A stretch of 64,000 nt of DNA from the NCBI GenBank assembly GCA_047495785.1, contig JBLDXI010000004.1, positions 1,116,001-1,180,000 of the forward strand, in the 5' to 3' direction. Positions 28,716 through 61,198 of this stretch are shown here, one piece after another; position 1 is the first letter of the stretch, and every line of letters starts with the position of its first letter. Made by a program: the position numbers and the translations under genes. The notes under the pieces were generated by a model. That model was not told the origin of the DNA, made no database searches, and saw only the letters and a list, made by a program, of their open reading frames with translations. The stretch is from Lepidodermella squamata (lineage: Eukaryota; Animalia; Gastrotricha).

Positions 28716-29179
28716 TATTTTATCAATGGCTGAAAAATGGATGAATGATAGGTAAAACTTTTTTTAAAGTAGTGGTGCTACGGTCACACAAGTATGGGGA
28801 GCGGCGCTCATTTTCTGGAAACGCGTGTGAACCCGTGTCCTTGAACCAGAAAATGTACCCAATTTGATACGGCTCCTACAAGGTTAAAATGATTCAAAAG
28901 CGTAACGAATATTGGTTCGTATTTGCAATCGGCGGGGTCTAAAGTTCATCTATTTTTAGCAAGGTGCGTCCAGACGGATTTTTTGTAGTTACATTTGTAA
29001 ACGTTTAGATTGAACCTGGAAAAAGCATTTTTGTCTTGTTCCGGATTATTTCCATTCAAAATGAATCAAGATGTTTTTTTATTTCGAGCGTCTTTTACAG
29101 ATAATTTCTTGGGAAACTTTTCGCTGCGAACTGGCTACGTCTTTTTTGGCTTGCTAACATATTTCCCATTTCACAAACA

Positions 29180-38908: not shown

Positions 38909-39056
38909 CAGAGAGCGAAGTGGGACCGCGGAACTGGTAGGGACAACGAAAATCGATATAAGGGTCCCCCCTTAGGTGCTAGATTGAGCTCACCATACGG
39001 ATCCATGGAACTGGTAGGGATGATCACTACCATCCCTGGCGGCACTTCGCTCTCTG
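38909..39056. mobile_element. hAT-type MITE
   Basis: Perfect TIR cagagagcgaagtg / cacttcgctctctg; perfect 8-bp TSD agtctgtt. Confidence 0.9.
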
Positions 39057-41646
39057 AGTCTGTTTTTACCTTATCTATGTACTTCATAAACGCAAAACAT
39101 GTTGATGATTCATTTCGGCACGCACACTACAAATGTGTCTTTTGTAGAAAACGTGGTTTTGCAGAAGACGTGGCCTGGCACGTCACAGATTTAACGGCAT
39201 TAAATAGAGATGAATGGCAAACAACGGTTTCAGAATTGGAAAATTACGAATTTCATGGTGAAAGCAAATTGCTAACTGCGGGGTGGGCGATCTTTCTTAA
39301 ATTTGGCCTTCCTTCGCCTTCCACAAAACCCGAAAGGGTATAGACGCCTTAGTCGAGTGGAAGTTAAATAAAATCATTCATATTCATATTCGAATTCATA
39401 TTCGAATTGAGCCTCGTAATTTTATTTTTCAAGCTGCAAGATTCTAAGAATATTAATGGGGAAAATAGTGAACGCGTCTTCTCGTCTGCCGGCGTGCTCT
39501 GATCTACGTCACCTGGCTTCTCTATAGGTTATAGAACAAGTGGCGCGTTCTTTTCGTTGAATATGGGGATATATGTTTCGCAGATTCCGGAAACTGCATA
39601 ATCTTCCCAAGGAATCGACAGCAGACCATATCTGCCGGGAGTGTCTGTCGCAGCAATTACACAATCATATTTAAGATTCGGGCCACCATCTTCCCAAGAG
39701 AGATCCTCAGAGTTGGAATTTGAAAGGCCGATCCATGTCCTAGAAGCACTCAACATCTGCTGGGCCATTAACGTCTCGTAGGTTGTTATTATAGTGGCGA
39801 GTCGACCGGAACCATTAGCGCAACCAGCAGTTGCTTGAGTTCTAGTCGTTGGACTGCCTGGGCTCGGTGTCATGAAAAACGATTTCCTAGCGCTAACGCA
39901 GCTGCTTTCAGTCGGATAAGCAATGATAGGTGGAGGGCGAGTTTCTGTGGCCAAGCAGCAGCCGCCATTACTATTCGATCGGCAAGTGCGCGTTCCATTA
40001 GACGTCTCGCATTGATAAAAGCTTGGAGAAAATAAAATTGACCTTTTGAGCTAAGAGCTAAGGAAAAGTCACGAAAAACTCACTTGATTTTACAGGTCAG
40101 AAAGTTGTTGAAAAGCAGACCGTTACCCCACGAATACTAAATACATAGAACAATTTCGAATCTTATCTTATTCGAAATGAGCGAGAAGATTACTGTAAAC
40201 TCTGGGCAGTTTATTGTTTTCGGAATTTAGCTAGGCATCCATGCATTTGATGTGTTGACCCTGTGATAAGATGCAGTTTTTTTTAGAAGAATAAGATGAA
40301 CTGTTCAAGCCATTACTTGGGGCAGGTTTACAGCCGGAAAATTCTGGTTTTGACCAGTCAAAACATCGCTGATGTGGGTTCATGTAAGCCGGAGCTAGGT
40401 AGAATTGAAAAGCTTCATAAATCTTCAAACTTCAACGAACACTTTACCGGATTTGCAATCGTCGGAGGAGTTGTAAGTAGCCCCTGTGATACTACCGATA
40501 GGACAAGAAGCATATTTCGACGCAGGCACGCATTCAACTAGCGTGTAAGATGTCTCATCCAAGCAAATTGTATGAGGCTTCTGTTAGTGAATACACATAA
40601 AATGAGGTACTTGAAAATAGCAACTTCCCGGGACTCTACAAAATCGAAATAATCTGATAGCCTGCTAAATCTATTTTCAAATATTAATCGTCCTAGTTTA
40701 TAGAAACCTGTGACAAAAGGCAATCGGCGTAATTGCTCGCAAACTCAGCCTGAGATCTCAATGTCGATAGCTGCAAAAACATACGTCTGCATATCCATTC
40801 GAGAATAAGGGAGGAATAATTTACGACTGCCGTGGGAGATGGGCAAGTGCTACGGCATATAGGACGAGTGGCAGTTGAACAAAGTCCAGCTGGCTGCAAA
40901 AAAAACCGTGATAATTCTGTGAGAATAAGAAAATATCAGGGAAGACGTACGCCTGTAGTGCAGTGAAATCTGTCCACGTAAGCTCTGCTAATAGATGCCT
41001 GTAAATAAGCTATGAAGCACGTTTTCAATTTTCGGGGCGTTTCAAGCCTGTTGAAAGCTTGTACTCCATGGCGTTGATTGGCAGCCAAGAAAAGATGCGT
41101 CTCTTGGGTTGAAGCATCGATAGAACGGCTCAAAGTCAGTATCATTTCGAATAACTGGCATTGAGAGAAGATTGAAAAAGAAAGGCATTTTACCTTTAAT
41201 GCGCTCATTACTTACTGTTTTGTTCTGTGATACATGCGCGCAGCGTGCTTCGAAAGCCAATCAGCGTCTAGATATCACGATAAATCATGTTCTGAATCTC
41301 GGTTTCTTCTGGCAAACTGACCGCTTTAGGAGGACACGGGCCATTTTCAGGAATACACGTATGCCGGCCTTTATTGTCGCAAAGCCGAGCTTCGAAGTTC
41401 TGTTTGACACCGAATGATTCATAATTCAGTGAAAATGAAATTCCACCAACCAGGAAATCTTTGATTGCTGACCTGCACAGATTATGTTGAGACTGGAAAT
41501 TGAGCCCGATGAATTCAGATATCTAAAAAATTAATTTAGCTAACACATTCATTTTTTTAACTCATTCAAATCCAAAGTTTTGCTGGAAATTGAGAAAATA
41601 ATTATTGCTGAATTCCTTTTCATTTTAGACGGATTAAATCAGGAAT

Positions 41647-41828
41647 AATTTGACCTCGGAGGGCGGGGACTACTCCAAAACAAATGACACCAAAATAAAA
41701 GCTACCATAACAGCAAAACCTTTCGATTGTTGCGCAACGAGAACCATTGGATTTTTTTTAACTGTTTTGGTCTCTTTCGTTTTGTCTTGGCTGTTTTGGA
41801 GTAGTCCCCGGAGGGCAATGTCAAATTA
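41647..41828. mobile_element. Intronic palindromic MITE in gene 3
   Basis: aatttgac...ggggactactccaaaaca / tgttttggagtagtcccc...gtcaaatt. Confidence 0.7.
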
Positions 41829-41990
41829 AATAATATTCCAAGGATCTGACTAAATTCTGTAAACAAATTTGGATTCAGTAACAAACCATGACTTCGTCAT
41901 TTTTATCGCAGCCGAGATTACGAGGAATGCATCGCATGTTGATTGTTTTGTAGTTGAAGCAGCTTCGAGCGGACTAGTAAGGAAGTGAAT

Positions 41991-42213
41991 TATCTACTAA
42001 TTTTCAGTGGTCATTAATTTTCGGTTTGATCTTTCAATTCAGTGTTTTCGCAAAAAAACCGAAATTAAAATCACCGAATATTAATCCTAAATAAAATCAA
42101 TCGATTGTTTCCTCAGCAGCCAGCCTAAAACCGAATTCAAATCCATCAAAATTTGATGTGCAGGCTCCAAAACCGAAGATTAATGACCACCGACCACCGA
42201 GAATTAGTAGATA
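41991..42213. mobile_element. Intronic palindromic MITE in gene 3
   Basis: tatctactaatt..gtggtcattaattttcggttt / aaaccgaagattaatgaccac..aattagtagata. Confidence 0.7.
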
Positions 42214-42962
42214 TACAGTAATGCTCGAGTTCTGTTTATCGAAGTTAGCGAGAAACTCACGCCTTCCGAACACGAGTCGAGAGACGGCAAAGCATAGCCG
42301 AGCTAAATTTAAGGCAATGAAACTGGCAGGCTGTGAAGGATGAGACTCAACGAGGAGCTCACCGGAATTTCATCTAAGAGCGAACAGTTCATTTTACAGC
42401 CTATGAAGACATCATTCAAGCGTGAAAAGCAACGCTTGTATTCGGCTTCGACTAAACCTTGAGAAATGATCAAGGCGAGTATAATTCGAAGAAAAAAGGT
42501 CATAGCTCTAATATTCAAATTGTTGAAAATGAAAAAATTAATGTCGAAGAAATAGGCCGATAAATTGTCAACCAAGCGAATAATGGTCAATCTCATTAAA
42601 TTTTCAGCAACACGCGTTCGAATCGAGAACAATTTTTCGATCTCGTTCTCCTTTTTAGCTAACTAGACAAAAATTGATTGTCCACGTCTCAGTTACGTTG
42701 AAGCCCATTTTATAATTGGCCAATTTAGGTCATTTTTTGTCCTAATTGTACTATTGCGCAACTCTACTAAGCGGACGAGGTCAAATTCCGAATCCAAGCA
42801 AACAGTCAAATTATTGTCGTGCGACTAATTTTTCACGATTGAAGTTCCAATTCCACGTCATTCTGAAATTTTCCAGCGATTTATTCACCTCATTTTTAAT
42901 GAATTTCCAAGGTTGTGTTAGAAAGCTTGACTAAAACATTTCGTAGCGCAGTTATGTTAAGC

Positions 42963-44619
42963 ATGATGAATCTTGTTCTCTCAATGATTCTATGGCAACT
43001 GATAGCCTCATCGCCATCGTTAGCAGCGAAGTCGCGTTGCTTCTCAGTTTTCAATAGCGAATTTAACGGCTGTAAAAACAATTGCTCACAACAGTTAGAG
43101 TACCAGGTGATCATCGAATATTATTTGGATTCATCTAAACAATTTGGTTTAAATTGTATTTTATTGTAGACTGGGACTCCGTTTTCTTCATCCGAGAACT
43201 GCAAAAACGGGGTGAGTTAAAACTTATCATTAATTTCTTAAATTTGTCACATTTCTGTCGGTGCAGGACGCTATACTTTGCTACAACTACAAGACTTACA
43301 GCGTTAGATGCATTCAAGACCGTTTCAAATGCAACAGAACCAACGAGCGCCAAGTTTGTCTAACCTTTCGCTCTTAATCCGCTCTTATCAATTCCATTCA
43401 GGCGGGAGTTTTCGAAAGACACGCATTATTCGGGGACAACTGGTCGGATTGCAGAAACACGTCAGCGCGCTTCGCTGTTAGTGAAAATCTTACCAAATCT
43501 ATCTCATTTTTTTCGAATTCAGTCACAGCGATTCGAACGCTGCATGAGAGGCGAATCTTTCATAACCTGTTCTCCTGATTCTCTCGCCTGTCCATTCAAT
43601 TTGGTACTTGGGCAATGTCTTAACCTCTGAATCAAAACTGTTCCACTTTCGTAGGATCCAGGCGACGAAGCAACTTCGTTTCGCAATCTCGAAGCATGCT
43701 TGAAGGGTGAAGGTAAATTTTCATAGTTTCCTCGATGAATCTAAGCTATGAATCTGTTGAAAAGTTGACCTTGCGATTCTCGAGGACCAAAAGCCGCACA
43801 TTCGCTGTGTTGACGTAAAGACTCGACATTTCTTGGGTTGCCGTCGGCGGAATACAGCCTGCTCACCAGATGCCGAACTGTACGCGCCTCGGCCTTTTGC
43901 CAACAAGGACTTGTGCCTTAAAGGGGTGAGTCATTAAGCTCTGAATTGACAAAGGTTCCCTCTAACGTTTGTTACATTCCAGACTGCCGTGCTTTGCAAC
44001 ACCACGTCAGGCAAAGTTTGCAGCGCGTTCTGTGAAGAGGATTTGCAAACGGTATTGTTTGGTTTTTTGTGCATGACTCATTTTCATAATGGGGTTTTAC
44101 ATAGGAAATTATTTACTCAGCTTCACAAGACTTCCCCACAAACTATGCTCAATGTGAACAGAGCCGAGTCGCTTCTGGGAACCATACAGTTCGTTTTGCT
44201 TATTGAATTCGTGAAATCCTATTTAAACTTGGCCCAAACAGCTTGTGAAGAATTTTACGGTTGCGGTAACGGATGCTGGGACATTCACTCAAGATGACGC
44301 GAAACGAGCCTGTTCGAACTTCACAAACTCTCGTTTAGCTTTGATCAAAACTGAAGCTCAACGGCAAGCTGTCTACGCCGTGATGACGAACGCATCGATC
44401 ACCACTGCTTACATCGGCTTGTCGAAAACCAAGGACCAGTGGTTGTGGGATGATGGTTCAGCTTATGACAACATGCCACCCTGGGCGCCTGGCTACCCGT
44501 CCGGGGCGAAGATGAACCGATGTGTTGGGCTGGCGAGCATTCTCGATGTAGCTGTTCAGTTGACGGATGGGTCTTGCGATTCGCCTTCAGCTAGCGCTTA
44601 CATTTGTGAGACTCTGTGA
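42963..44619 (+). CDS. Lectin gene 4: signal + 5 four-Cys modules + CTLD, 10 exons, intact
   Basis: MMNLVLSMILWQLIASSPSLAAKSRCFSVFNSEFNGC...; all exons splice in frame; CTLD with AYIGL, WLWDDGS, WAPGYP, RCV, YICE. Confidence 0.85.
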
Positions 44620-45222
44620 TACTGCTCATTTACTCCTCTCTGAAATTGGTAAACTCGTATTTTGCCCATTCGAAGCAGTAAGTGAACTAGTTAGGTCTAC
44701 TTTTTAGAAAATTAGTACTTGGTTCAGTATCCCAAGTTTCGACCTGTTCCGACAAATTTGAACGAGTGCCAGAAAAGCCTGCAGTTGATATAGTAATTTA
44801 TATCAAGGCCCATTTTGAAATTCTAAAAAACGATCGAAACTGTTTCTTTATCCTGTCCGCGATTTAAATCCGCGATTTAAAAAAAACAATTTGATCTAGT
44901 TCTCCCGTTTGCCAATGAGACAAAAAACTATTGTCAAATCGAAAAGTGTTCAGAATTATTTTTTTCGATTGCTTTTTCCAGTTCAGTTTTTAGCTGATCA
45001 AGGACAATAGACAATATATTTGTCTGGTCTGGAAAAGCAAACGACGTCAATCACAGAAAATAAATTTATCCTTTACGAATTATCGGCCTAGGCCTAGTTT
45101 TTTGGTGATTAGCTTCATGATAGAGATCTGATTTCTCCGTAGCTTTTTTCACTAAAACCAGGCTCTAGTGAATATTGAAATTGTTTTCATAAATTTCCCC
45201 TACTTTTAGACATTTTTTGAAA

Positions 45223-46903
45223 ATGTTTTTTCGCATCTGCCTAACGCTTATTGTATTAAACGGCCCGTTGTTCACATATGCGAAATGGTTCCGTTGCTTC
45301 TCAGTTTTTGATAACGAATTCAAGGGCTGCCAGAATAACACTTCTTGCGGGCAATACGCGTACAAGGTTACTCTAGGCATTTATTTTGTTCAACCCAGAC
45401 TATCAACATCTTCTGTTTTTCTAGTCAGACATCACTTTCCCTGAATCGGCCGATTGCGAAAAAGGGGTGGGTTGGAAAACATTTTTCCCGAATTTTCTCA
45501 ATTTCTTCATTGTGAAGAGAGCTCGGCTTTGCTACAACTATGTGGAAGTCAGCTATAGGTGCATTCGGGGCCGATTGCAATGCAACAGAGTCAACGAGAG
45601 CCAGGTTCTGCTTTTCTGAACTCATTTCAATTTACTTCTTTATTTTCAATCGACTCGCAGGCTGGATTTTACGATCGAAATGAAAAATTTAGCGACAATT
45701 GGGCAGAGTGTATGAATGCCGCAGAACGCTTACCCGTGAGTTTTATTTGAAAATAAAATGAATTAAAATTACAATTACCTTTCGTTTTTTCAGTTGCAGC
45801 CATCTGAACGCTGCTTCTCAGGCGGCAATTTCGTTGCATGTTTCCCTTTCTCCCTCGGCTGTCCACTAAATTTGGTGATTTTGCAACGTACGTGTATTTT
45901 TACAGCAATTAATTCGATTATCAATTTTCAAGGAATTTGACTTTGATTCACCTTTATACGACAATCTGGCCTTGTGTTTGAGGGGTGTAGGTAAGGTTCA
46001 GGCTTTGCTGTGATAATCAGAAAATAAGAAATTGATTTTTTCAGCGCCTCCCTCTGTTATCGATGACCAGAAGCCGCACGTTCGATGCATGAACCGCAAC
46101 ACTGAAGCTTTTGTAGCTTGCCGGCGCAAAAATACAGGCTGCTCACCGGATGTTCAGATGTTCGCGCTACAACCTTTTGCCAACAAAAACATGTGCCTGA
46201 ACGGGGTGAGTACGACCCATTCCAATAGTTTAAACATTAAATTGCAACATTGCTGAGATTATACTTTGATTTTCTCGCTTTTCAGGATGCTGTGTTGTGC
46301 AACACTCCCACCGGCGTTAAATGCCGTCCCTTCTGCCTGAGAGAAACGCAACTAGTTTAGTTTCAAATCGCTGTTTTTCGACTTATTCATGCCACGTCCC
46401 CGATAGGTAACCGTTTATTCAAAATCGAAAGACTTCGCGACTAATTATGCACAATGTTTCCGAAGCCGACCCAATGTGAGCGAATTTGTTTCCTTCCCGT
46501 CCTCTAAATAAAATCATTTTTATAGCCTGGGACAATTTACACTGTTATGCTTGGGAATGCTGAAATTTTCACGCAAGATGACGCGAAACGAGCCTGTTCA
46601 AACTTCACAAACTCTCGGTTAGCTTTAATCAAAACAGAAGCTCAACGGCAAGCTGTCTACGCCGCAATGACGAACGCCTCGATCACCACTGCTTACATCG
46701 GCTTGTCGAAGACCAAGGACCAGTGGCTGTGGGGTGACAGTTCAGCGTATGACAACATGCCACCCTGGGCGCCTGGCTACCCGTCCGAGGCGAAGATGAA
46801 CCGATGTGTTGGCCTGGCGAGTATCAGCGATGCAGCTGTTCAGTTGACTGATGGGTCTTGCGTTTTGCCTTCAGCAAATGCTTACATTTGTGAGACTCTG
46901 TGA
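45223..46903 (+). CDS. Lectin gene 5: signal + 5 modules + CTLD, 10 exons, intact
   Basis: MFFRICLTLIVLNGPLFTYAKWFRCFSVFDNEFKGC...; same exon and phase pattern as gene 4. Confidence 0.85.
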
Positions 46904-47115
46904 TGCGCTCCAATAGTACCATCAGGAACTGATTGACCGCAATTTCCTCCTCTGCTTATCTTTGACTGAAACCTGGAACTTCTATTCTCAAGCACTATTA
47001 CAACTGAAGAAGTTGAGCTAGATGATCTTGAAATATGTACCTGCGAGCATTTTCCGCCAATGCAATATCTTTTTCCCGCTCGTATATTTTTCATGTTCAT
47101 CATGTTTTAGGCTCA

Positions 47116-48927
47116 ATGAATCTTTTTATTCGCATTTGCCTGTTGCTCCTTGTCGCAGAGGCTCAGGTTTCGCGTTGCTTCTCCGTTTTTAATAACAAAT
47201 TTATCGGCTGTTCCAAGGACTGCGACCAGCACGAGTATCAGGTTAACGCCATCACTAATTGTTTCAACCTTAAATCAACACAATTTTCTAATTTTTAGTC
47301 CGACCTTTTGTACAGATCTCCCATAGATTGCCTTCAAGGGGTGCGTTTCAAATTAGTTTCATATGTTAGAAGGGTATCCGTGCCCCCGGAGACGGCCACC
47401 TCCCACGCCGCATACGGGCACAATTCCTTTCCTTCGGGTCCGCCTGCTGCTGCTGCCGCCAATTATTTCATATGTTTTCTTTTGGTTTGAAGTACGCTCG
47501 ACTATGTTACAACCATGCGGACTACAGCTATACGTGCATTCGGGGCCGATTGAACTGCAAGAAAACCAACAACGAGATCCAGGTTTGTTTTGAATTCAAT
47601 AAAATGCGACAAGCCTTCCTGACTTTGTTTTTCTCGTCATTTTCCCGATCGAATCTGCAGGCCGGAATCTTCGATTCGAAAGTTGCTAATGACGCTACTG
47701 TTTTCAGGCTGAATTGGGCTGACTGTCTTAATGCCAGAAAAATTGCGCCGGTAAGTTCATAATGATAAACCGTCCCAATCGTGTGCCTGAACCTTTCAAG
47801 CTCAGCCAAGAGTCATTTTCCGTCATCTCCATTAGAAATCAGAATCGAGATTACTCAATCCAAATCGTATCTTTCAATTTCAGTTGCAGCCTTTCAAGCG
47901 CTGCTTTTCGGGCGGCAATTTCGTTTCCTGTTATCCTACTTCTCTCGGCTGTCCGAAAAATTTGGTAATTTGACTGCGCTGAAAGTTTCCGCCATGACTG
48001 CTTTTCTTTCTATTTTTCCTAATTTCTAGGATGCTAACAACGAGCTACCTATCTACATCAATTTGGAATCTTGCTTGACCGGTGTAGGTGAACTTTTTTC
48101 TCATTTAACCTTTTTCTCTAATTTCTTTTTGTTTCGGCATGCTACTGTTTTGAAAAACGTCGATCTCTTAACCAGAGATGGTCCGGTTCCAAATAACCGC
48201 CGGTTCTAACCGGGTTGAACCCGGTTCTTCCGAACCGAAACCGCCCGGTTCCATTTTTTTCCAGCATCAAAAACCGCCGGTTCGCGTTTTGGCTATACAC
48301 AGCTGAACCAGCTAAAATTAGAGTTTTCCACCGTAGATATCCCAAGTTTTCACTGTATGTGTTGCACCTGCATGATTCAGTCGATTATCGGTTATTAATT
48401 ATGAATGATCGATCCCATCTCAAATAGTGGCACCCGCGGTTAACCGCCGGTTAAACCGAAAAAACCAGGTCACACCTCAAAAAGTCCGGAACCAAACCGA
48501 ACCGAACCGAACCGGACAGATAAAAATGGAACCGGAATATCTCTACTCTTAACACTAGCACTTTTAATTTTTCAACAGTTCCACAATCTGTAATCGATAG
48601 CCTAAAGCCGCATGTCCGCTGCAAGGATAGGAAGAATGGCGATTTTGTAGGTTGCCGCCTCAGGAGTGCAGGCTGCTCACCAGATGCAAAGATCTACGCA
48701 CCGCAGCCTTTTGTCAACAAGAAAATGTGTCCGAAAGGGGTGAGTGCTTTTAACGTGTAACAATAGATTTGTGTTGTTTGATTTCTTGATTTTTTATAAT
48801 GCTGTACTATGCAAAACCCCATCCGCCGAAACTTGCAATGCTTATTGTCGGAGCGAATTATTCATAGTTTGATTACAGGAAAATATTTAAAGCTTTCTCA
48901 CGCCGAGTTTTTCCTAGGCATCGGTCT
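47116..48927 (+). pseudogene. Lectin gene 6: 3'-truncated, no CTLD; close paralog of gene 8
   Basis: Exons 1-7 intact; the exon 8 acceptor lacks AG (ttttat|aat versus ttcag|aat in gene 8); exon 9 breaks after gcatcggtct into the upstream region of the next gene. Confidence 0.8.
48173..48545. mobile_element. hAT-type MITE with GAACC/GGTTC subterminal repeats
   Basis: TIR cagagatggtccggttcc / ggaaccggaatatctcta; 8-bp TSD ctcttaac; empty site in the paralogous gene 8 intron at ~55373. Confidence 0.95.
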
Positions 48928-49027
48928 GTGTTCGTAAGTCTGTTCCTTCATTCTTTAACTCCATTGCTCGTTATTCTAAGAATATTTTCCGCTCTTATAT
49001 TTTTCGATTTAACATTTGTTAGGCTCG

Positions 49028-50451
49028 AAGAAATTGCTTATTTACATCAGCCCATGGCTCCTTGTCGCCGACGCTGAGGGTGACCAATCTGAGCTATTGT
49101 GGCATTGCTTCTCGATTTTCGACAACAATCACAGCGATTTTCATGACGGAAAAACTTGATCGTGTAAAAAAACATGAACCTTAATTCAGTCCGTAAAGTG
49201 GTATGCTGGAATGATCAACTGCATTATTTGGGTGAGTGCGAACTTATCATTTTTGCATATTGTTGCGAGTTTCTCTACTTTGTAGTACGCTCGACTTTGC
49301 TAGTACAACTGTGTGGAATGTTGAATTCAGCTTCAGGTGCACTCCCCACACAATGCTGGGCAACGAAACCGAAGAAAGCGTCTTGGTTTTCTCAACTTTC
49401 CTCAGCATCATATCGACTCTCAGGCTGCATCTTTCGATCTTCGATGAATTCAACCGATTTTCGAGCAATTAGGCAGAATCCTTGCACGCCGCACAATTCT
49501 TGCCGGTGAGTTGCGAGTATTATACCCATGTTCGTATAAAGACCCCGACGAAAGGGCGTTTCAACTTAAAGGCTCATTGGGAGTATTTCACAGCCTACTT
49601 AAAACTTAAAATCTTTTATTTCGTCCCCGTTAGTAACGCACATAGTTGGATTGAAATGGCCTTTGTTCGTCCTTTTCATTAAAGATCAACCATAGGTAAA
49701 GGTGTATGAAATTTAGCATTATCAGTTTATTTCTTGTTTATAAATAAGGTTTATAAATAAACTGACACCATATATTCACCAAAAAACCAGTGCTCCGAGT
49801 ACGGGGGGAAGGGGGGTAAACAAACCCCCTTGGCGTTCGAAAATTTCTGAAAAACGTAAGGGTCCCCCCTGTTTTGCTAATTTTGGGCTCAAAATGGCTC
49901 TATTTACACCCTCAGAGCTGGACCTAGTCGGATCACTGCAAAAAACTGGTTATCAAATAGGCAAAGGTTTATTTAAATTCTAAATCGGAAGACTTCGCAA
50001 AGAACTACGCTCGACGTCAACAAAGCCTACCCACTGTGAGCGAATTTGTATCTTTCCTTGCATCCTTTTACATTTCGTTTCTTTAGCCTGGACCAACCTA
50101 AACTGTTATGCGAGGGAAATCTGAATTATTCCCGCGAGTTGAGGCAAGATTCCAACAAGACAAAGCCGTGATCGAAACCGAAGCTGAGCGACAAGCTGCC
50201 TACGCCGCGATGACAAGCGCTCGATCACCACCGCTTACATCGGCTTGTCGGAAACTAACGACCAGTGGTTGTGGGGTGACGGTACGAGGTACGGCCTACA
50301 ACAACATGCCTCCCTGGGCGCCTGGCTACCCGTCCGAGGCTAAGATGAACCGATGTGTTGGCCTGGCGAGCATTCTCGATGCAGCTGTTCAGTTGACGGA
50401 TGGATCTTGCGATTCGCCTTCCGCCAGCGCTTATATCTGTGAGACATGTGA
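49028..50451 (+). pseudogene. Lectin gene 7 pseudogene
   Basis: ATG replaced by AAG, stop codons in exons 1 and 3, middle exons missing, frameshifted CTLD exon. Confidence 0.85.
49788..49938. mobile_element. hAT-type MITE; inverted copy at ~58761-58911, fragment at ~22843-22875
   Basis: TIR cagtgctccgagta / tagtcggatcactg; 8-bp TSD caaaaaac. Confidence 0.9.
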
Positions 50452-50894
50452 TGCGCTCAATTGTTTTTGTCAGCAATTGAGGTTTTTACCTCAATTTCAT
50501 CTTCTTTCTCTATTCTCTATGCAACTTCTTTCCTCAAAACCAATCACAGCCTAATCGATTTAAGTGAATTCAGCTCAGGCATTATGCTTCCGGATTGCAG
50601 GATCAAAGGTCAGCCTCAGAAAAAAATAGCAGCTGCGACGCGGCCATGCTTTTGATTTTTTTGCCAGACCGTGATTTCTTCGCTCCGTCATTTCGTCATT
50701 TCGTCGTTCCGTGATATTTATCCTGCGAGGATTTAATACCATTCAGAAATAGTAAGAAATAATAAAATAATCAAGCCATCGAAACACCATCGATGCACTG
50801 CGGTTGCAAAAAGTCACCAAATTACTCCATAATCATATAATAGCATATGATATATTTCATCATTTTACAAATAATCAGATTATGCTCTTTACAA

Positions 50895-53016
50895 ATGCCA
50901 TTTACTTATACTGAACCAGTAGACAAAGAAGAGTTGGCCAAAACGATCAGTCGATCTCGCCCTAAATCAGATTCGGTCGCCGAGCTGAAACCGCGAAGTG
51001 TAATAGCGAGAGCCGAAAAAGGGCAACTCATTCATCTCCAGCAGATGCCAGAGTCATACCTGGGTGCTGTGATGAATGGCGCTGTTGTCACTAAGGCTAC
51101 TTTGAAAATGGATTATCAAGGGATCGGAAGTGTTGAAGTTTCCTGGCCGCGCAAAGCAGAACCTTCGCCGGAGTCTAAAGCTCTCGAGTAAAATTATTTA
51201 GCTTAAATTTCCAATGCGATAAAAAATACTGCATGTGCTTTATCATCGAAGATTGATCAGAAAAGGCCTGCGGCATAATCTGGGTGCTCGGCAAACCTAT
51301 AGCATGCGGGTAGACTTAGGTTTACCTGATGTCAAGCGAGAGGTTTTTTACGAAATTCGAAAAAGGATTGGAAACATTCTACCAATTCACTCGGTTGAAG
51401 GTGATGTTTTTAGCGCTCGTAAAAACGCCAGAAAAATAATATTTTGAAAATATATTAAAAACGAAATTTTAAAATAGTATTTATAAAAATATTTAATTAT
51501 TTGTGAAATTTCATTAATTTAAAATTTAAATATTTAAATATATTTTAGATTTAAATACTTAAATAATATTTTATTATTTTATTTATATATTTGAAATATA
51601 TTTGAAATATTTGAATTCTAGATGACGGCGCCTGGAGGTCGCTATCGGATCTAGCTAATGCATGGATTCGAGACAAGATTATGTCATCTTCCTCCGTCAA
51701 TGACATTCGTCTTCAGATAGATGGCTCTGCCAACCGTACTAATCAAATACCTGGCAACGTTATCGCGAACCTTTGTAGTGTTGCAACTAAAAAAACTATC
51801 GGTTTGAGCGGCGAGCATATAATGGCGGCTTTTCGCGGGAAAGAAACCAGCGAAAATCTGGAAACATACATGGCTCCTTTCTTCAAAGATTTGTGTTCAA
51901 CCATTAATAACGGAATAATTGTTGAAAATGCTATGTATTCATTCCGCCTCATCGCAATATGTGACTACGCGCTTATGACGAAGCTCTTCGCCTGCGGTCA
52001 CCCCAACACCGACTACAGGTGCGTTGATTGCGAGTTTTTCGAATCATCTGTTACGAAGCCACCTCTTCGAACTTCGAGACACGCTTCTTCAACGCAAACT
52101 GCACATCTCTATCAAACTCGACTACGGCGGCAAAACAGCTTTTCGTCGAAAAAACGGTTATTCAAGAAAAGAAAATTTAATCTGTTTAAAAATCAGTGGA
52201 AAGGAACGAAAGGCTGGTCGAAAACCTTCTCGCCATTGATAAGACTGTCAAGAAGAAAATTAGTAATAATTCCAGACGTTTTTCATATGCAAGTTAATGT
52301 ACCTAAGCTTCTCTTTCGTGCCGTAATTTTAACCCACTAAATTAATGATTTTTGCAACTGTTTGATTTCAGGTTTTCCGATTTTACCACTTGGCAAATTT
52401 GAAATGCAGCGCTTTGAAATTAGCCGTTTTTCTGGAGAGCGCCGATCTGCGGAAACGAAAACGAATACAGGTGGTTTTTGACAAGTGGTGTTCCTCAGTC
52501 ACTCCTGCCATAAAAAATTCGAATCACTACGGCTTGGCTAAGGCAATTTATTGAAAAATTTACTTCTCGGCATTAGTTACCACATTGCTTTAGGTCTTCA
52601 AACAGTTTGCTGGGAATCTCGCGAAAACATCTTTGAAAACTGGCTTTTTCATTCCGGAAGAAATAGCTTTAACCCCTGCTTCCGAGCACCGCCTCACCTT
52701 GCTGAAAAAACTGATCCTAATGTCGCAGGTCGTATTCGATGACGTCAGAGCACGGTCAAAGGATAAAACAGTCAAAATAATGATCAACAAATACCCTGAG
52801 ATGTGGAAAGAAGCTGTAGGAAAGGTGACTTCATACGCACATATGCTCAGCGATCATGTTTACGAGCACCTGGACGAATTCGACCTACATGCTTTATCTG
52901 CTGAGAACGCTGAGCTGGAATTGAAGAAAGTATTGAAATTCGCTTTGAAATCGTCAACGAATGCAAGACCTTTGGAGAATGAAAACCGCCTTTTTTATGC
53001 GAAAATGGCTGATTAA
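50895..53016 (+). CDS. RAG1-core/Transib-like DDE transposase, 5 exons, ~560-580 aa, apparently intact
   Basis: Exons ~50895-51188, 51252-51400, 51622-52322, 52372-52470 (or 52542 with a GC donor), 52594-53016. Motifs RLQIDGS, AICDYAL...YRCVDC, PDVFH and TSYAHMLSDHVYE...ALSAENAEL are colinear with RAG1 SCDG, GYDEK...CTLC, DALH and YFHKTLAH...WASEGNES. Confidence 0.75.
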
Positions 53017-53138
53017 TTTGATTATACGGTTGAATGTTTTACAAAATTTGAGCAAGACATTACACCTTTATTTGGCTTCGACATCGGAGTGCTTCAATTA
53101 CTTCTATTTGATCACAAATTTGAAAATAAAAATTGAGT

Positions 53139-53702
53139 TCAAGCATCTTTCTCGATCACTCGCCATTTGCTCGGATTAAGGCTGGTGTCCCAGACCATTT
53201 CGTAGTCATCCTTAGAAAAGTCGAATTTGAAGAAGCCTTTCTTTATGTCAGCGTCCAGCTCAGCTATCTTTCGCAAAATCGGGGTTTGTTTTTTGCCCAC
53301 CATTCGCTCGAACGCCCCGTTTGCGTCTTCGGGATTTTCCACCATCCACGCGTCCCACGCAGACTTGGGAGCGGTGGATGATTTGCCGATTAGTGCAAAC
53401 GCTGCATGCATATGTCGCAATCGATTTTCCATTTCAAAGGACCATTTCGAGTAACCCCCTGAATAAAAAAATCATTATCGTTGACTGCTTTAAAAATTAA
53501 AAAAATGAGTACCTCGATAGCTATTGACTGCGAGTAAAACGTTTCGCAGTTTCACTCGGCGTTCGGCTGGGAGTTGCGGAGAAATGACCGTTTGCGACAA
53601 CTCAGTCATGAGTTGCTCGTCGGTCATCGCGGCAGCCGCCCCGGCATCAACTTTACGCTTCTTACCGGGGTGACTGGGACCGGGTGCGCTATTCGAAGCC
53701 AT
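53139..53702 (-). CDS. Transposon partner protein of unknown function, ~169 aa, 2 exons
   Basis: Exons 53702-53513 and 53458-53139 (54-nt GT-AG phase-1 intron) join in frame: MASNSAPGPSHPGKKRKVD...NSYR/GGYSKWSFEMENRLRHMH...WRVIEKDA; NLS-like KKRKV. Confidence 0.75.
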
Positions 53703-53957
53703 GGATAGGAACAGAAAAATCGGAAAAATCAAAATAATATTTTTGCCGGAAACGAAGAAACCACGAAGTGACGAAGCGACGAAAAATATGCACGCAGAGA
53801 TATACAAAAAACGCAATAACAATTTTTTTCGGGAGTTGACCTTTGATCCTGCAATACGGAAGCATAATGCCAAATTATCTCCCTGTAAACATTTGTCGCT
53901 ATATTTATCCGGCTGGTTTGTTTTTCATTTTCGATTTTCGTTATAATTTAGGCTGAT

Positions 53958-56233
53958 ATGAATCTGTTTATTCGCATCTGCCTGTGGCTACTTGTCGCAG
54001 ACGCTCAAATAATTATCGCAGAGTTGAACAGGTGGCGTTGCTTCTCAGTTTTTGATAACAAATTCACCGGTTGTGAAGTCAAATGCGACCAACACGAGTA
54101 TCAGGTTAACAACATGAATATTTATTGTTTCAACTCTAAATTAACGACATTTTCCAATTTTTAGTCCGACATTTCGTTCAATACTCTTCCATCTTGCCGT
54201 GACGGGGTGTGTTTGAAATTACTTTATCTATAGCGGCGGAAGAGTGTTTTACGGACGGAACGTGTATGTGTGACTAGCGCTCAGTCTGTTGCCCCCTGGT
54301 ATGAAAAAATGATGGGAGAAACCTACTTTGCTTACTGCATGGGCAGCGTCGAGAGTAGGATTTTTTCATGTAAGATTGATAAGAGGGTCCACCATTTCAA
54401 GGTCTAAGATAAAAACCGCTCGAAGACACTCACCTTACTCCACATTGTAGCGGGCAAAAATGTGGGGCTGGTTTCGATTTTCGACTCAATTTTAGCTTAA
54501 TTCGGCTTGGAGACTGCGAGCAAACCGTACTTAAGCGATTCTCCTGATATTTGGACCAGGAATAGTCTAGAATTTGTCATTTCTTGGCAGAAAGCCCCTT
54601 ATACCAGTATCAAACCCGGTCATCTTACAGCCCCGGCCAACCGCCCCGCCTTATTAGGACGCGGCACACTGCTGCCAATTCTTAGATTTGTTTGTATTTG
54701 CTTTGAAAGGCCGCTCGACTATGCTACAACCATGCGGATTACAGCTATACGTGCATTCGGGGCCCATTGAAATGCAACAAAACCAGCAACGAGATCGAGG
54801 TTCGTGCTGAAAGTCCAGACAATGCGTCCTGCCTTCCTCAGTTTTTTTATTTCATTTTTCCGATCGATTTTGCAGGCTGGACTCTTCAATGAACCAGCTG
54901 ATTTCAGGATCAATTGGGCAGACTGTCTCAATGCCACAAAAATTGCGCCTGTAAGTTTGAAATAATATATCGAGTCGATCGTGCGCCTCAACATTCTTTA
55001 GCCCAGCCAGCGAGTCATTTTTTTCGTTGGTTCCATTAAAAAAATAAAACTTGACATTAATGAAATCAGAATGGAGATTACTCAATCGAAATCGTGCCTT
55101 TTAAATTCAGTTGCAGCCATTTAAACGATGCTTTTCTGGCGGCAATTTTGTTTCCTGTTATCCTACGTCTCTCGGCTGTCCGAGAAATTTGGTAAGTTGA
55201 CGGTGCTGAAAGTTCCGTCACCACTGCTATTCTTTCTATTTTCTAGGATGTCAACAATGAACTACCCACCTACAACAATTTGCAATCTTGCTTGACCGGT
55301 GCAGGTGAGCATTTAACCTTTTTCTCTAATTTCTTTTTGTTTCGGCATGCTACTGTTTTGAAAAACGTCGACCTCTTAACACTAGCACTTTTAATGTTTC
55401 AACAGTTCCACAATCTGTAATTGATGGACTAAAGCCGCATGTCCGCTGCAAGGATAGGAAGAATGGCGATTTTGTAGGTTGCCGCCTCAAAAGCGCAGGC
55501 TGCAGCCCAGATGCAAAGATCTACGCACCGCAGCCGTTTGTCGACAAGAAAATGTGTCTGAAAGGGGTAAGTGCGCAGTAATTTTTCAGCAGCTTCTTAT
55601 TTTATTATTTCTTTCAGAATGCTGTGCTATGCAAAAGCCCATCCAGCGAAACTTGCAATGCCTTTTGCAGGAGACAAATATTTATAGTTTGGTTTCAAGT
55701 AATTATTTACCCTTTTTCACGCGAGTTTTCCACAGGCATCGGTCTATTCGAGGTCAGCAGACTTCGCGACTAACTATGCGCAATGTAAACGTAACCAAAC
55801 CACGGTGAGTGAATTTGCTACACCTCTTTTTATCAAATTCAATTCACTTAATCAGCCTGGGAAGAGCTACACTGCTGTGCGTGCAAATGCTGAACTATTC
55901 ACGCCAGGCGACGCAAGATCGGCTTGTTCGGAAAACACGAACTCGCGACTGGCTGTGATCGAAACCGAAGCAGACCGACAAGCTGTCTACGCCGCAATGA
56001 CGAACGCCTCGATCACCATCGCTTACATCGGCTTGTCGAAAACTAACGACCTGTGGCTGTTGGATGATGGTTCAGCTTATGACAACATGCCACCCTGGGC
56101 GCCGGGCTACCCGTCAGAGGTTAAGATGAACCGATGTGTTGGACTGGCGAGTATCAGTGATGCAGCTGTTCAGTTGACGGATGGATCTTGCGATTCGCCT
56201 TCAGCTAGCGCTTACATTTGTGAGACGCTGTGA
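53958..56233 (+). CDS. Lectin gene 8: signal + 5 modules + CTLD, 10 exons, intact
   Basis: MNLFIRICLWLLVADAQIIIAELNRWRCFSVFDNKFTGC...; all exons in frame; ~450-bp insertion in intron 2. Confidence 0.85.
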
Positions 56234-56329
56234 TAAACTGTATTTTTCTGCCAATTTCTCTATCTTAATTATTCGCATAATTCTCTAAATATCGCATATG
56301 ACCGAAAGTAAGGGTAAAATGTCGTTGGC

Positions 56330-56495
56330 CAGTGTGCGAAGTAGGATCCGGGAGCTGAGGTGTTTTCTACTTGTTTTCGAGGACCCAGCCGAATATACCA
56401 AAGGGTCCACCCTGTGGTTTTTTCAGTCTTCCTCTGTTTGGATTCCTGGAGCTGGGGTGTCGCGACACCCCAACACCCCTGTACTTCGCACCCTG
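56330..56495. mobile_element. hAT-type MITE
   Basis: TIR cagtgtgcgaagta / tacttcgcaccctg; perfect 8-bp TSD tcgttggc. Confidence 0.9.
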
Positions 56496-56662
56496 TCGTT
56501 GGCAGTATTTCTGCTCTGAAAATTTAATGTCAAGTCAAAATCGAATTTTTCTGGTGAACGTTCCCACTTGTATAGTATGCTATTGTGTTCGTAAATCTGT
56601 TCCTTCATTCTTTGACTATATAGCACGTTATTCTAAGAATATTTTCAGCTCTTATAATTCAG

Positions 56663-58571
56663 GCTGCATTCTTGCATTCTTCATTCTTCGATGAATTGGA
56701 CTCATTTTCGGGCTATTGGGCGGAGTGCTTGCACGCCGGACAATTCTTGCGTGTTAGTTGCGAGTGTTATACCCATGTTCCTAATACAATATTCTGAATA
56801 TTTCGCAGCCGTAAAAAATTGCGGAGCCTCATTCGAATCTGTTTAACGCTTAATTGTAATTTAAATTTGGAATTTTTTTATTTTAAGGCGCAAACAATTA
56901 CGATTTTTAGCCCGTCCTCCCTAAGCATGAGGATCCCTCATGGTTAGGTAAAATATTCAATGTACATGAATTCTAATAATACATAAAATGTGTCGCATAT
57001 AGACGGCGGGTTGAAATTGGTGAAGTTAAGGCTAATTCTCGATATTTCTCATAAGTATCGGAATTCAATGAAATAAGGGCATCCACTGCTTGGATCTGTA
57101 ATCCTTAACAAAAATCGGCGAAAACCATGGGACAAATCCTCCATCTTTTCTGAGTCTGAGTAAAAATGATTAAGCAACAGGCGCATTGATAATTGCGCAG
57201 TAGCTCGTGTCTCGTGTGCAACTTTCAGGGGGGGATGGGGGGATCACCAGCTCGGGAATCTAAGATCGCACCCTGCTCGTGTGAATGCAGCGAGAAATAG
57301 CACAATTAATACTGGGGTAGAAGATAAAATAATCATCTCATCATCTAAATAAGGAACCGTTAACCTTGCTGCTTAGTAGTATGTAGTCTGAATCCTTGTC
57401 CGGAAACCTGTGTGGGTCCCATCTACCTAGCCGCAGCCTTTTACCAACAAGGAAATGTGCCTGAAAGGGGTGAGTTGTGAGTTCTCCCAGCAGTTATAGC
57501 GAATTCCCTCTGTTTTTGTTCGAAGAATGCTGAGCTCTGTCACGAACCATCTGGCGCAATTTGTCGGGTCTTCTGTAATAGGAAATTAGAAAGAGTTTGC
57601 TTCAAAATAAGTCATTCTTCCACTTTAATGCCGTTTCTTAACAGCCATTCGTCTGCTCCAAGTCGGCAGACTTTGCGGCCAATTTTGAGAATTGCCAACG
57701 TAGCAAATACACGGTGAGCGATTTGATTCTTCTGAATCTGAATACCGATACTGAAACAGAACCGAAATAAATGGTCTCGTACAAATGGTAAGGAGCCTCA
57801 GAGTCAACCATACAGGCAATAATGGGGCTATTGAGTTGAGCTAGGAGCTGGGAGAATATCTACACAGCTTACTCAATTTGGCTCAGATTTTAAATACTGA
57901 ATTCAGACCACTCCTACTGTTGATTTGTTGTTCGCATGGCCAAAGTGAAAAATCTGAGAAAAAAACAATAGGGGGACCCTTCGGTGATGAAATTGGTGGT
58001 TGGAATTCCACGACCCTACTACGCACATGGATGACGCAAAACTTCTAAACATAGCGCATGAATCACGGGGAGACATAGAATTTCTATTTTCCACCTAATC
58101 AGTTGATTGCCTACGAATTCAACTTACTAATTTGTATTCTGATATGCCGGCTGATTTTAATAAATAAATATTGTCTTGGTTATTTATGTACAGGGTGCGA
58201 AAGATTTTACTGTTGTGGCAACGGATGCTGAAACATTGACGCAAGACGACGCAAGGAGGGCGTGTTCGAACAAGACAAACTCTCGCTTAGCTGTGATCGA
58301 AACCGAAGCTCAACGACAAGCTGTTTACGCCGCAATGTTAGACGCCTCGGTCACCACCGCTTACATCGGCTTGTCGAAAACTAAAGACCAGTGGTTGTGG
58401 GATGACGGTTCAGCCTATGCTGACATGCCACCCTGGGCGCCTGGCTACCTATCCTAGGCGAAGATGAACCGATGTGTTGGGCTGGCGAGTATCAGCGATG
58501 CAGCTGTGAATTTGCCCTTAGGGTCTTGCGTTTCGCCTTCAGCCGACGCTTACATTTGTGAGACTCGGTGA
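56663..58571 (+). pseudogene. Lectin gene 9 pseudogene, paralog of gene 7
   Basis: Exons 1-3 deleted; remnants of exons 4, 7, 8 and 9; the CTLD exon has GAG to TAG at 58455-58457. Confidence 0.85.
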
Positions 58572-59356
58572 TTTTCAAATGATGAAATTGATTGAGTTCA
58601 GCTGTATATTTGATTATGATAACTGAGTATGTGAGTTATGTTTGAGTAAAATAGAGGAGAAAATTAAAATCGATTCACTGGTCCTTTCTTGCCTCTTCAA
58701 TATCCAAACAGTAGCTCCAGATTGCGCGAATTTGGAAATTTGTTTGAGACCGGCAGGGGGTAGGGTTCCGACTAGGTCCAGCTCTGAGGGGGGTAAATCG
58801 AGCATTTTGAGCCCTAAATTTGAAAATCAGCAGTTTTTCAGAAAATTTCGAACGCCAGGGGGGTTTGTTTACCCCCCTTACCCCCCCCCCCCCCCCCCAT
58901 ACTCGGACCACTCGGACCGGTATCATTCGTGTCGTGGAAGAAAAAACCTTAGCACAATATCTTTTGCTTGCTGGTGCGAGCTGGTTGTTCCGCGCAACCA
59001 TCCGCGTTCATCAAACAGTTCTTCCCATTCAGACGGGCAATATTTTATCGAATTAGCGCCCGAATTTGGAATATTAAATTTTTTACGAGGTGAGTTGTCA
59101 GTTGCACTGAAGATTAGTCAATTAACCGAGCGGAATGAAATCTGAACTGATTCCGCTTATTTGTCTAGAAAGTGTTGCGTAATTGAAGTCGCGTGTCGAA
59201 CAGCATGACGTCATTAAATTTGAAAAAATCGCCGAGAAAGAATTCATTTGAAATTATGCTGAGCTAGATATTTCACTATTGGACTATTATATCCCGATTT
59301 ATAGAGGACACTGATAAGTACAATTTATCAACGTTTTTTGAATGCTCTAGTTACGA

Positions 59357-61198
59357 ATGAATCTGCCAGTTCACATTGTCATCTGGTTTCTAATCGGCTA
59401 CTTTCCCTGTTTTTCATCAGCCCAATGGAAGCGTTGCTTCTCAGTTTTCGATAACAGCTATTCCGGCTGTCGAACAAATTGCTCAATCACGCAGCAATAC
59501 CAGGTCATTTTTCTCATTTTCTAAGTTTTTAATTCAGATATTAATATATTTCGCTCTACTACAGGTTGGGAAATCTTTTGCCGACTCCGCGAAATGCAAA
59601 ATAGGCGTGAGTTAATCGACTTATCTCATTTGTTGAAGTTGAAAAATGACTTTTACCCAAGAACGCAAGGCTTTGCTTCGACCACGTCTCGATAACCCTA
59701 CGATGCGTTCCAGGCAATGTCAAATGTGACACCATTAGCGAGCTCGATGTGAGTTTAGTTTCCGAACCTCACATATCTAAATTTTAATTACGACTATCGA
59801 AATACAGGTTGGAACGTTCAATCGCAAACAATTCGGATTAAATTGGAAAGATTGCAGGGCAGCCCTAGCTGTATTTCCGGTTGGTTTTTTTTATACCTAA
59901 TTCGTATAATTAAAGTTTTCAACGTCAGCTAACTGTTCTCAGAATAAGGATTTTTTTTTACTTTGATTATTTCAGTCTCGCAAGTTCATTCGTTGCACCA
60001 TAGGTGACTCAATCGTTACGTGTGTTCCTTTTCCCAACAAATGCCCGCTTAACATGGTGAGTCTGCGACTACCTCTTCGCTCAATCTTTTGTACATAATG
60101 GACAGAAAATGAGCTTAACTCCGATTCACAAGTACCGAGGACTAAAATCTTGCCTGAATGGCACAGGTTTTTTTGAAAGCATTTTTCATTTCACTCATAG
60201 TATTTCCAACTTTCGAAACAGGCGATTACCCTATGAGCAATAAGCCACACATTCGCTGTTTCAACGCTAAGAACAAGCAGTTCGAAGGGTGCCGCCCGAA
60301 AACCACAGGCTGCTCGCCTGATATCGAACTGCTTTCACCGCAGCCCTTCGCAGATAAGTTCAACTGCCTTACTGGCGTAAGGTTCAAAGTTCGATTCGAT
60401 CATGAGCTTAATTTAAATGTTTTCAAGGTAGCTGTTCGCTGTAAAACGCCGTCTCGCAAGATTTGCAATGGATTCTGCCAACAGGACTCACAAATCGTAA
60501 TGCTTCGGCCTAATTATGAAACTTGTTGTGATTTCTCTAGCTTTCTACAGGAAGCCGTGTTTTCAGATTCGAGGGACTTTGCAGATAACTACGCGCAATG
60601 TCTGCATTCCAGTGGCCAAATTCCCATCTTGGGGTCAGGACGGGTTCGCAAATTTCAGCCATCAATAGTTCCCAAGCCCTAAGCCTTAGCATTTGGACAT
60701 ATAACCATCAGTGACTGAATTTAAAATGGATTAACACGAAATTGACCGCGTAAAATACAGGAAACTATAGAAAAATTGCCCCTCACTTTTTTGATTTTGC
60801 AAATATTTTAAATTTTCTAGCGGATCAAAACGTTTGCTGTCCATGTCCCATCGTACGAATTCGAGTCGGATCGCATGCAATTGGACGCGATACTAGCTTG
60901 TTCTGAGTGGGAGAACACATCTCTGGCGATGATAAAGAATGAAGATGAGCGGCAGGCTGTCTATGAAGCCATGGTCAACGCCGAAGTTACGAGTGCCTAC
61001 TTGGATTTGTCGAAAGGACTAGGCGGATGGACGTGGGGCGATGGCAGCGTGTATGATTCGATGCCACCATGGGCGCCAAATTACCCGAGGCCGAGGACAT
61101 GCGTCGGGATTGCCAGAATTATCGACAAAGCATTATACCTTGTCGATGGATCTTGCAATCTTCCTTCGGCCTTCGCTTTTATCTGTGAAACGTTTTGA
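59357..61198 (+). CDS. Lectin gene 10: signal + 5 modules + more divergent CTLD, 10 exons, intact
   Basis: MNLPVHIVIWFLIGYFPCFSSAQWKRCFSVFDNSYSGC...; last exon from 60821 RIKTFAVH...WAPNYP...FICETF. Confidence 0.85.

Follow-up and report, generated by a model that had tools for sequence, protein, structure and literature searches.

In the genome of the gastrotrich Lepidodermella squamata, a cluster of tandem genes appears very probably to exchange the core of its last protein domain by interlocus gene conversion between neighbouring copies, with the upstream exons of the same genes evolving separately. We analysed a window of 64,000 nucleotides (contig JBLDXI010000004.1, positions 1,116,001 to 1,180,000 of the forward strand, or C4:1116001-1180000, where C4, like C64 below, is a contig label), in which six related genes, A to F, stand head to tail on the plus strand at 42954-61198 (42.9-61.2 kb). 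Their six copies of a C-type lectin-like domain (CTLD) all fall within 42-62 kb of the window. Mosaic tracts, discordant trees and a contrast in synonymous divergence are shown directly. The homogenisation it produces is partial, patchy and episodic, the CTLD lineages are still recognisable, and the exchanging unit is the conserved core of the domain and not the exon as such.

The contrast within these genes had been noticed in an earlier reading of the window (the original prediction, whose genes 4, 5 and 9 are our A, B and E, and whose region of interest, 42963 to 58571, runs from an ATG of gene A to the stop codon of gene E). It proposed recurrent gene conversion of the CTLD exon, diversifying selection on the N-terminal modules, or both, and the observations from which it started hold up. 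The translations of A and B differ at exactly nine of their last 111 residues, as had been counted, and CTLD DNA is highly similar up to the stop codon, with 82-91% identity among A to E (A-B 91.1%, A-C 85.5%, A-D 85.3%, B-E 84.5%, A-E 82.8%, D-E 82.8%); the similarity starts ~45 nt inside the 5' end of the exon and stops within a few bases of the stop codon. Upstream, the module exons show 45-61% amino-acid identity between paralogues, close to the half of residues said to differ, and the introns of A and B, described as barely aligning, do not align at all in a blastn comparison, which finds matches only at the exon of module 4 (M4) and at the CTLD exon. The pseudogenes C and E do retain similar CTLDs, at 74-91% DNA identity to the intact ones depending on the block.

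The clearest single event lies in gene B. The core of its CTLD, at 46575-46900 on the plus strand (from exon position ~50 to the last codon), is A-type sequence between B-type flanks: the core is 91.9% identical to A and to A2, a segmental counterpart of A, and 84.7% identical to B's own counterparts (Bl), while intron 8 (78.5%), the first 42 nt of the CTLD exon (87%) and the 3' flank (76%) all find their best match in Bl. The trees follow the same division. On the upstream exons B joins Bl (99/99), on CTLD positions 43-375 it falls inside the A clade (99/98), and forcing B and Bl to group in the latter lowers the log-likelihood by 24.8 and is rejected by the approximately unbiased (AU) test (p 0.012); the comparison of module and CTLD trees that the original prediction had suggested thus returns discordant trees. 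The core of B is a ~330-bp A-type tract acquired by non-crossover conversion. Unequal crossing-over was considered as the source of the same tract and is ruled out by the B-type 3' flank.

Smaller patches occur in other copies. Gene A carries one at 44538-44598 on the plus strand (exon positions 297-357) that is of D/C type, unlike A1 and A2, the two counterparts of A; here 11 of 11 informative sites match D2, D and C against A2 (run probability <= 1.9e-6). A1 and A2 are themselves young duplicates, with a synonymous divergence (dS) of 0.06, and the differences between their CTLDs are clustered in blocks, with states that recur in other copies. One A2 block, at 217-225, is otherwise present only in pseudogene C, a truncated CTLD fragment adjoining A2 has A1/A2-type sequence before a C-type 3' end, and E2 and Dl (a counterpart of D) have in common a nine-site block at 316-330. 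The visible mosaics are germline ones, whereas templated diversification of the chicken immunoglobulin type is somatic conversion from pseudogene donors into an expressed gene. Because A2 and A have patches in common with the truncated fragment and pseudogene C, dead copies must be counted among the exchanging sequences, and this accounts for the apparent retention of the CTLD in the pseudogenes.

Formal tests of recombination single out the same part of the genes. With a Bonferroni correction over all 1320 triplets, runs of shared sites are significant in A (297-357, 11 sites to 0, p <= 0.003), in A2 (227-302, 7 to 0, p 0.02) and in E2 (316-330, 9 to 0, p 0.03). At p < 0.01, 19 of 336 triplets are mosaic in the CTLD core, against 1 of 322 in the upstream exons, with ~3 expected, and the pairwise homoplasy index (PHI) test is significant in the CTLD (p <= 0.0005) but not in the upstream exons of the same genes (p 0.34).

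Synonymous divergence tells the same story at a broader scale. The original prediction had held that uniform dS along the genes would point to purifying selection alone; by four estimators (NG86, LWL85, YN00 and maximum likelihood), dS in the window genes is not uniform, reaching 0.9-1.5 in six upstream exons and 0.2-0.5, or 2.5-5 times less, in the CTLD, at similar ratios of nonsynonymous to synonymous divergence (omega, 0.2-0.4). For A and B the synonymous counts in CTLD and upstream exons differ with a Fisher p of 2e-5. Averaged over 11 copies, dS descends in steps, from ~0.8-1.2 upstream through 0.65-0.70 in codons 1-45 of the CTLD exon to ~0.4 in codons 46-120.

Could low dS in the CTLD be a property of the domain itself? 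Two more segmental copies of the array lie at C64:19-100 kb and C4:733-870 kb; in them positional counterparts can be recognised for A, B, D and E (A1 and A2 for A, Bl for B, Dl for D; an E2-X pair was also compared), and these internal counterparts let conversion and selection be separated. Between A and A1 or A2, introns are 8-12% different and upstream exon dS is 0.09-0.11, whereas CTLD dS is 0.18-0.26 with a nonsynonymous divergence (dN) of 0.05; the M4 protein is 100% identical in all three. CTLD dS is also at least as high as upstream dS for B-Bl, D-Dl and E2-X, so the synonymous sites of the CTLD are not constrained. Synonymous constraint and codon bias are thereby ruled out as the cause of low CTLD dS; GC content at third codon positions is only slightly raised in the CTLD core (0.57-0.58 versus 0.48-0.53). 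The ratio of paralogue to counterpart divergence drops from ~10 upstream to ~1.5 in the CTLD. A domain that changes at least as fast as the rest of the gene when counterparts are compared, and yet is far more alike between paralogues, bears the signature of exchange among paralogues. Of the original proposal, recurrent conversion confined to the CTLD therefore stands, on the joint evidence of dS, trees, AU test, PHI test and site runs; its extension to the whole exon does not, since the exchange is patchy and runs from codon 15 to the stop.

Why should exchange be restricted to this one stretch? We suggest that the ~330 bp between codon 15 and the stop, the core of the last exon, would be repeatedly patched by non-allelic conversion between neighbouring copies, in tracts from ~15 bp up to the whole core, with broken or truncated copies serving as conversion partners. 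The upstream exons, short and split by diverged introns, would no longer exchange and would evolve under purifying selection along separate lineages. Tracts may end where homology ends: the CTLD core would be the sole stretch both long and similar enough to pair, with selection on the fold maintaining that similarity, and such a pairing limit would make conversion self-sustaining in the core and impossible elsewhere.

The other half of the original proposal, diversifying selection on the modules, is not borne out, and we consider it unlikely that positive selection there is the main cause of the variable/constant contrast. The modules of paralogues do differ at about half of their residues, and their omega between lineages (0.25-0.4) is above that of the CTLD core. 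However, omega is below 1 in every pooled comparison; it is 0.03-0.8 per exon and 0.15-0.45 between counterparts, and the sole value above 1 (1.49) comes from a noisy 28-codon exon, the first half of module 2 (M2a), in the B-C comparison. The modules of A, A1 and A2 have dN of 0.00-0.02, with M4 identical, module proteins differ by 0-2% between counterparts, and the young pair C-D gives an omega of 0.03-0.33 per exon. Module dS is high too, so the divergence of the modules is a sign of age as well as of amino-acid change. Within the CTLD, positive selection on the C-terminal patch was a separate candidate, set aside at an omega of 0.33.

Purifying selection alone would explain the pattern if the CTLD were simply more constrained, with neutral divergence equal along the genes and the introns saturated, and several observations speak for this account and weigh against conversion. 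Omega is ~0.17 in the CTLD core and ~0.3 in the modules, which makes purifying selection about twice as strong in the core and accounts for part of the protein-level contrast. At four-fold degenerate sites, of which the upstream exons offer few (19-28), divergence is 0.33-0.45 in the CTLD and 0.35-0.55 upstream, and for many cross-cluster pairs the two are similar, with a modest deficit that falls short of significance in the individual pair. The A, D, E and X lineages can still be told apart in the CTLD tree, and copies remain 9-18% apart, as expected of incomplete homogenisation. Moreover, rate variation along the sequence can inflate the triplet and PHI tests, and the direction of transfer is assigned by parsimony alone. 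We nevertheless judge selection without exchange to be very unlikely, because it does not account for the reduction of CTLD dS in the window genes by all four methods, for a CTLD that diverges faster than the modules between counterparts, for an A-type core within the B-type flanks of gene B with the alternative grouping rejected, for mosaic runs and PHI values that reach significance in the CTLD only, or for patches common to pseudogenes and a truncated fragment.

Hardly credible, finally, is an artefact of assembly or amplification, in which chimeric reads or collapsed copies would have created the mosaic CTLDs: the assembly was probably made from multiple-displacement-amplified DNA, a source of chimeric reads (PMC11660948) and as such a further point against conversion, and the near-identical copies that lie 70-79 kb apart on C4 may be duplicates left uncollapsed, but every window CTLD differs from the others, the tracts that were converted are now 8% diverged from their donors and hence old, patches of 15-330 bp are far below the ~13-kb reads, and the same lineage structure appears in three separate clusters.

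The genes that take part in this exchange are more complex than a three-part architecture, although the variable N-terminus and the CTLD of the original prediction are both seen. A, B, C and D have a common nine-exon plan, in which open frames, AG/GT boundaries and intron phases agree. Exon 1 encodes a signal peptide and the first half of module 1, exon 2 the second half; modules 2 and 3 are likewise split over two exons each, module 4 occupies a single exon, and a 23-codon Cys-rich pre-CTLD exon precedes the terminal CTLD exon of 125 codons. Upstream exons measure 42-160 bp and introns 48-65 nt, barring those with inserted extra DNA. Gene A (42954-44619) is intact, with open frames, AG/GT boundaries and consistent phases throughout its nine exons: 42954-43106 (signal peptide and M1a), 43170-43211 (M1b), 43267-43353 (M2a), 43402-43476 (M2b), 43523-43603 (M3a), 43655 to ~43712 (M3b), ~43765 to 43925 (M4), 43983-44051 (pre-CTLD) and 44242-44619 (CTLD and stop). 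Gene B (45223-46903, CTLD exon 46526-46903) is also intact, and gene D (53958-56233, CTLD exon 55856-56233) follows the same plan. After the M3b exon of D the sequence reads GCAGGT (55301-55306) and not the GTAGGT of C; either the intron is of GC-AG type or D, intact in other respects, has a splice defect. Gene F (59357-61198, CTLD exon 60821-61198) belongs to the same family, with a CTLD only ~56% identical to the others at the protein level, and it lies outside the exchanging group.

The two remaining members are pseudogenes with different histories. Gene C (47116-50451, CTLD exon 50087-50451) has five frame-breaking indels in its CTLD exon (deletions of 8, 10, 1 and 1 nt and a 7-nt insertion), has lost the acceptor of exon 8 (tat for cag), and has a last intron enlarged by ~1 kb of extra DNA (48927-49976). 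The extra DNA recurs twice on C64 (39966-40533 and 43144-43706, 71-72% identical) and probably represents either a repeat or an old portion of the array. Exons 1-8 of C are sister to those of D, with C-D introns 77-83% identical, and its CTLD has a mosaic composition, closest to B in the flanks (66-70%) and to A at the 3' end (77/84). The shared exons and introns, together with the B-like flanks of the C CTLD, would fit an origin of C and D by tandem duplication of a unit with its two ends in the last introns of successive genes. Directly after the C CTLD lies a transposon (50578-53871) that is not part of the lectin family. The flank of the C64 counterpart matches the window only to 50577, and that copy lacks the inserted transposon. 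Gene E (57431-58571, CTLD exon 58194-58571) retains only the end of M4, the pre-CTLD exon and the CTLD exon; its 5' exons are gone, and the CTLD has an in-frame TAG at 58455.

What do these genes encode? Protein searches and folding used single exons and not joined spliced proteins. Against the Pfam family PF00059 Lectin_C, with a cut-off of 22.6 bits, the scores are 39.1 bits for A, 36.2 for B and 32.1 for the first part of E; the longer open frames of D and C have no Pfam match at E <= 0.01, although they are 80-90% identical to A. All copies contain, in translation, the four core cysteines and a WIGL-type motif (RAC..., YIGL, NRCVGL, DGSC, YICE). The canonical Ca2+/sugar motifs were not found at their expected positions, where the sequence reads G-Y-P-S at the EPN/QPD site and L-T-D-G-S-C at the WND site, and the proteins should not be named sugar-binding lectins from sequence alone. 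The best matches of the CTLD among solved structures are to CTLDs that do not bind sugar, such as lithostathine/Reg and some mannose-receptor CTLDs (E 3.5e-4 to 1e-3), with W-x-x-G-x-PS replacing the EPN motif in the matched stretch.

Each gene has four modules of ~45 residues with four Cys each, and the module exons matched no Pfam family. Module 4 (43767-43925 and paralogues) has the pattern K-P-H-x-R-C ... F-x-x-C-R ... G-C-S-P-D ... P-F-x-x-K-x-x-C-L-x-G, and an AlphaFold model built from 12 paralogues (mean predicted local distance difference test score, pLDDT, 89.5) has three strands and two short helices. Searched against the PDB, the model found no match below E = 1, and the MbtH-like top matches look like chance topology. 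A word-based protein search with the CTLD exon of D gave 51 candidates, none at E <= 0.001, among searched proteins of ~69-219 aa, a range in which full-length relatives of ~350 aa could not appear, so the search says little on the distribution of the family; a protein atlas search returned generic Lectin_C clusters only, without taxonomy. The proteins, each with a signal peptide, are predicted to be secreted. We found no description of this gene family in the literature; it is undescribed and apparently lineage-specific.

The surroundings of the array are rich in related sequence. In all, the family has roughly 25 members, spread over the window, C64:19-100 kb, C4:733-870 kb and C4:1.18-1.2 Mb. 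At least three segmental copies of it exist, 3-25% diverged and differing in gene content: A is duplicated on C64, C64:22.5-27 kb combines a B-type 5' end with an X-type 3' part, the counterpart of D lacks M4 and the pre-CTLD exon, and at C4:733-870 kb copies spaced 70-79 kb apart form nearly identical pairs, reflecting either very recent duplication or uncollapsed haplotypes. More distant module-plus-CTLD relatives fill much of the remaining window on both strands (4560-4727, 13690-14865, 23171-23713 and 26460-28718, the latter two on the minus strand, and 38441-42503); their CTLDs are ~28-45% identical to that of A and appear to be outside the exchanging group, and one of these relatives stands head to head with A (signal exon 42503-42381, minus strand). 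The window also contains a retrotransposon of long interspersed nuclear element (LINE) type at 9370-13542 on the minus strand, in which a 1077-aa frame encodes endonuclease and reverse-transcriptase domains and the 289-aa frame after it has a zinc-knuckle match that is weak and under the Pfam cut-off, and, also on the minus strand, an ankyrin-repeat open frame of 311 aa (32819-33754), with tandem DNA repeats of ~100 bp, 87-93% identical, at 33160-33620.

The intuitive reading of these genes is reversed by our results: the "constant" CTLD is the actively exchanged part, and the "variable" modules are old, stable lineage markers. The analysis also documents, in a poorly known phylum, a compact, apparently lineage-specific family of predicted secreted proteins that join four undescribed Cys modules to a CTLD without sugar motifs. 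We regard as quite unlikely a more ambitious proposal, that the array is a germline repertoire in which short variant blocks are shuffled among paralogues, with pseudogenes and fragments as a reservoir, to yield combinatorial secreted binding proteins for innate defence. In such a repertoire most of the blocks would fall in the loop region (codons 72-77 and 99-116), which in canonical CTLDs makes up the ligand site, and each copy would retain its own fixed set of four recognition modules. To our knowledge, the immunity of this phylum is unstudied.

Conversion between neighbouring copies, the reading we favour, has well-described precedents. Interlocus conversion together with purifying selection is known in tandem paralogues, from mammalian Hsp70 genes (PMC5865164) to human segmental duplications (PMC3790853), and mosaic divergence has been modelled for HMA4 (bioRxiv 10.1101/2025.10.29.685298). 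The gastrotrich array resembles these cases in its short one-way transfers between neighbours, in its mosaic divergence, in the joint action of selection and conversion, and in a low paralogue dS limited to the region that stays similar. Unlike them, it exchanges one 3' domain core of a nine-exon gene, with eight upstream exons excluded, and its homogenisation is partial, at 82-92% identity. Gene conversion and exon exchange have also been reported in the CTLD receptor clusters of vertebrate natural killer (NK) cells, Ly49/KLRA and NKG2/KLRC, which likewise combine tandem CTLD genes, pseudogenes within the array and sequence exchange. The NK clusters encode type II membrane receptors of vertebrates, whereas the array proteins, from a gastrotrich, are predicted to be secreted and have N-terminal Cys modules, and the likeness implies no homology beyond the CTLD fold. 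Lithostathine/Reg and the mannose-receptor CTLDs show a weak similarity and contain nothing that corresponds to the four upstream modules. The process is thus a known one and involves no new mechanism; what is new is the gene family in which it operates and the clean internal control that its segmental copies provide.

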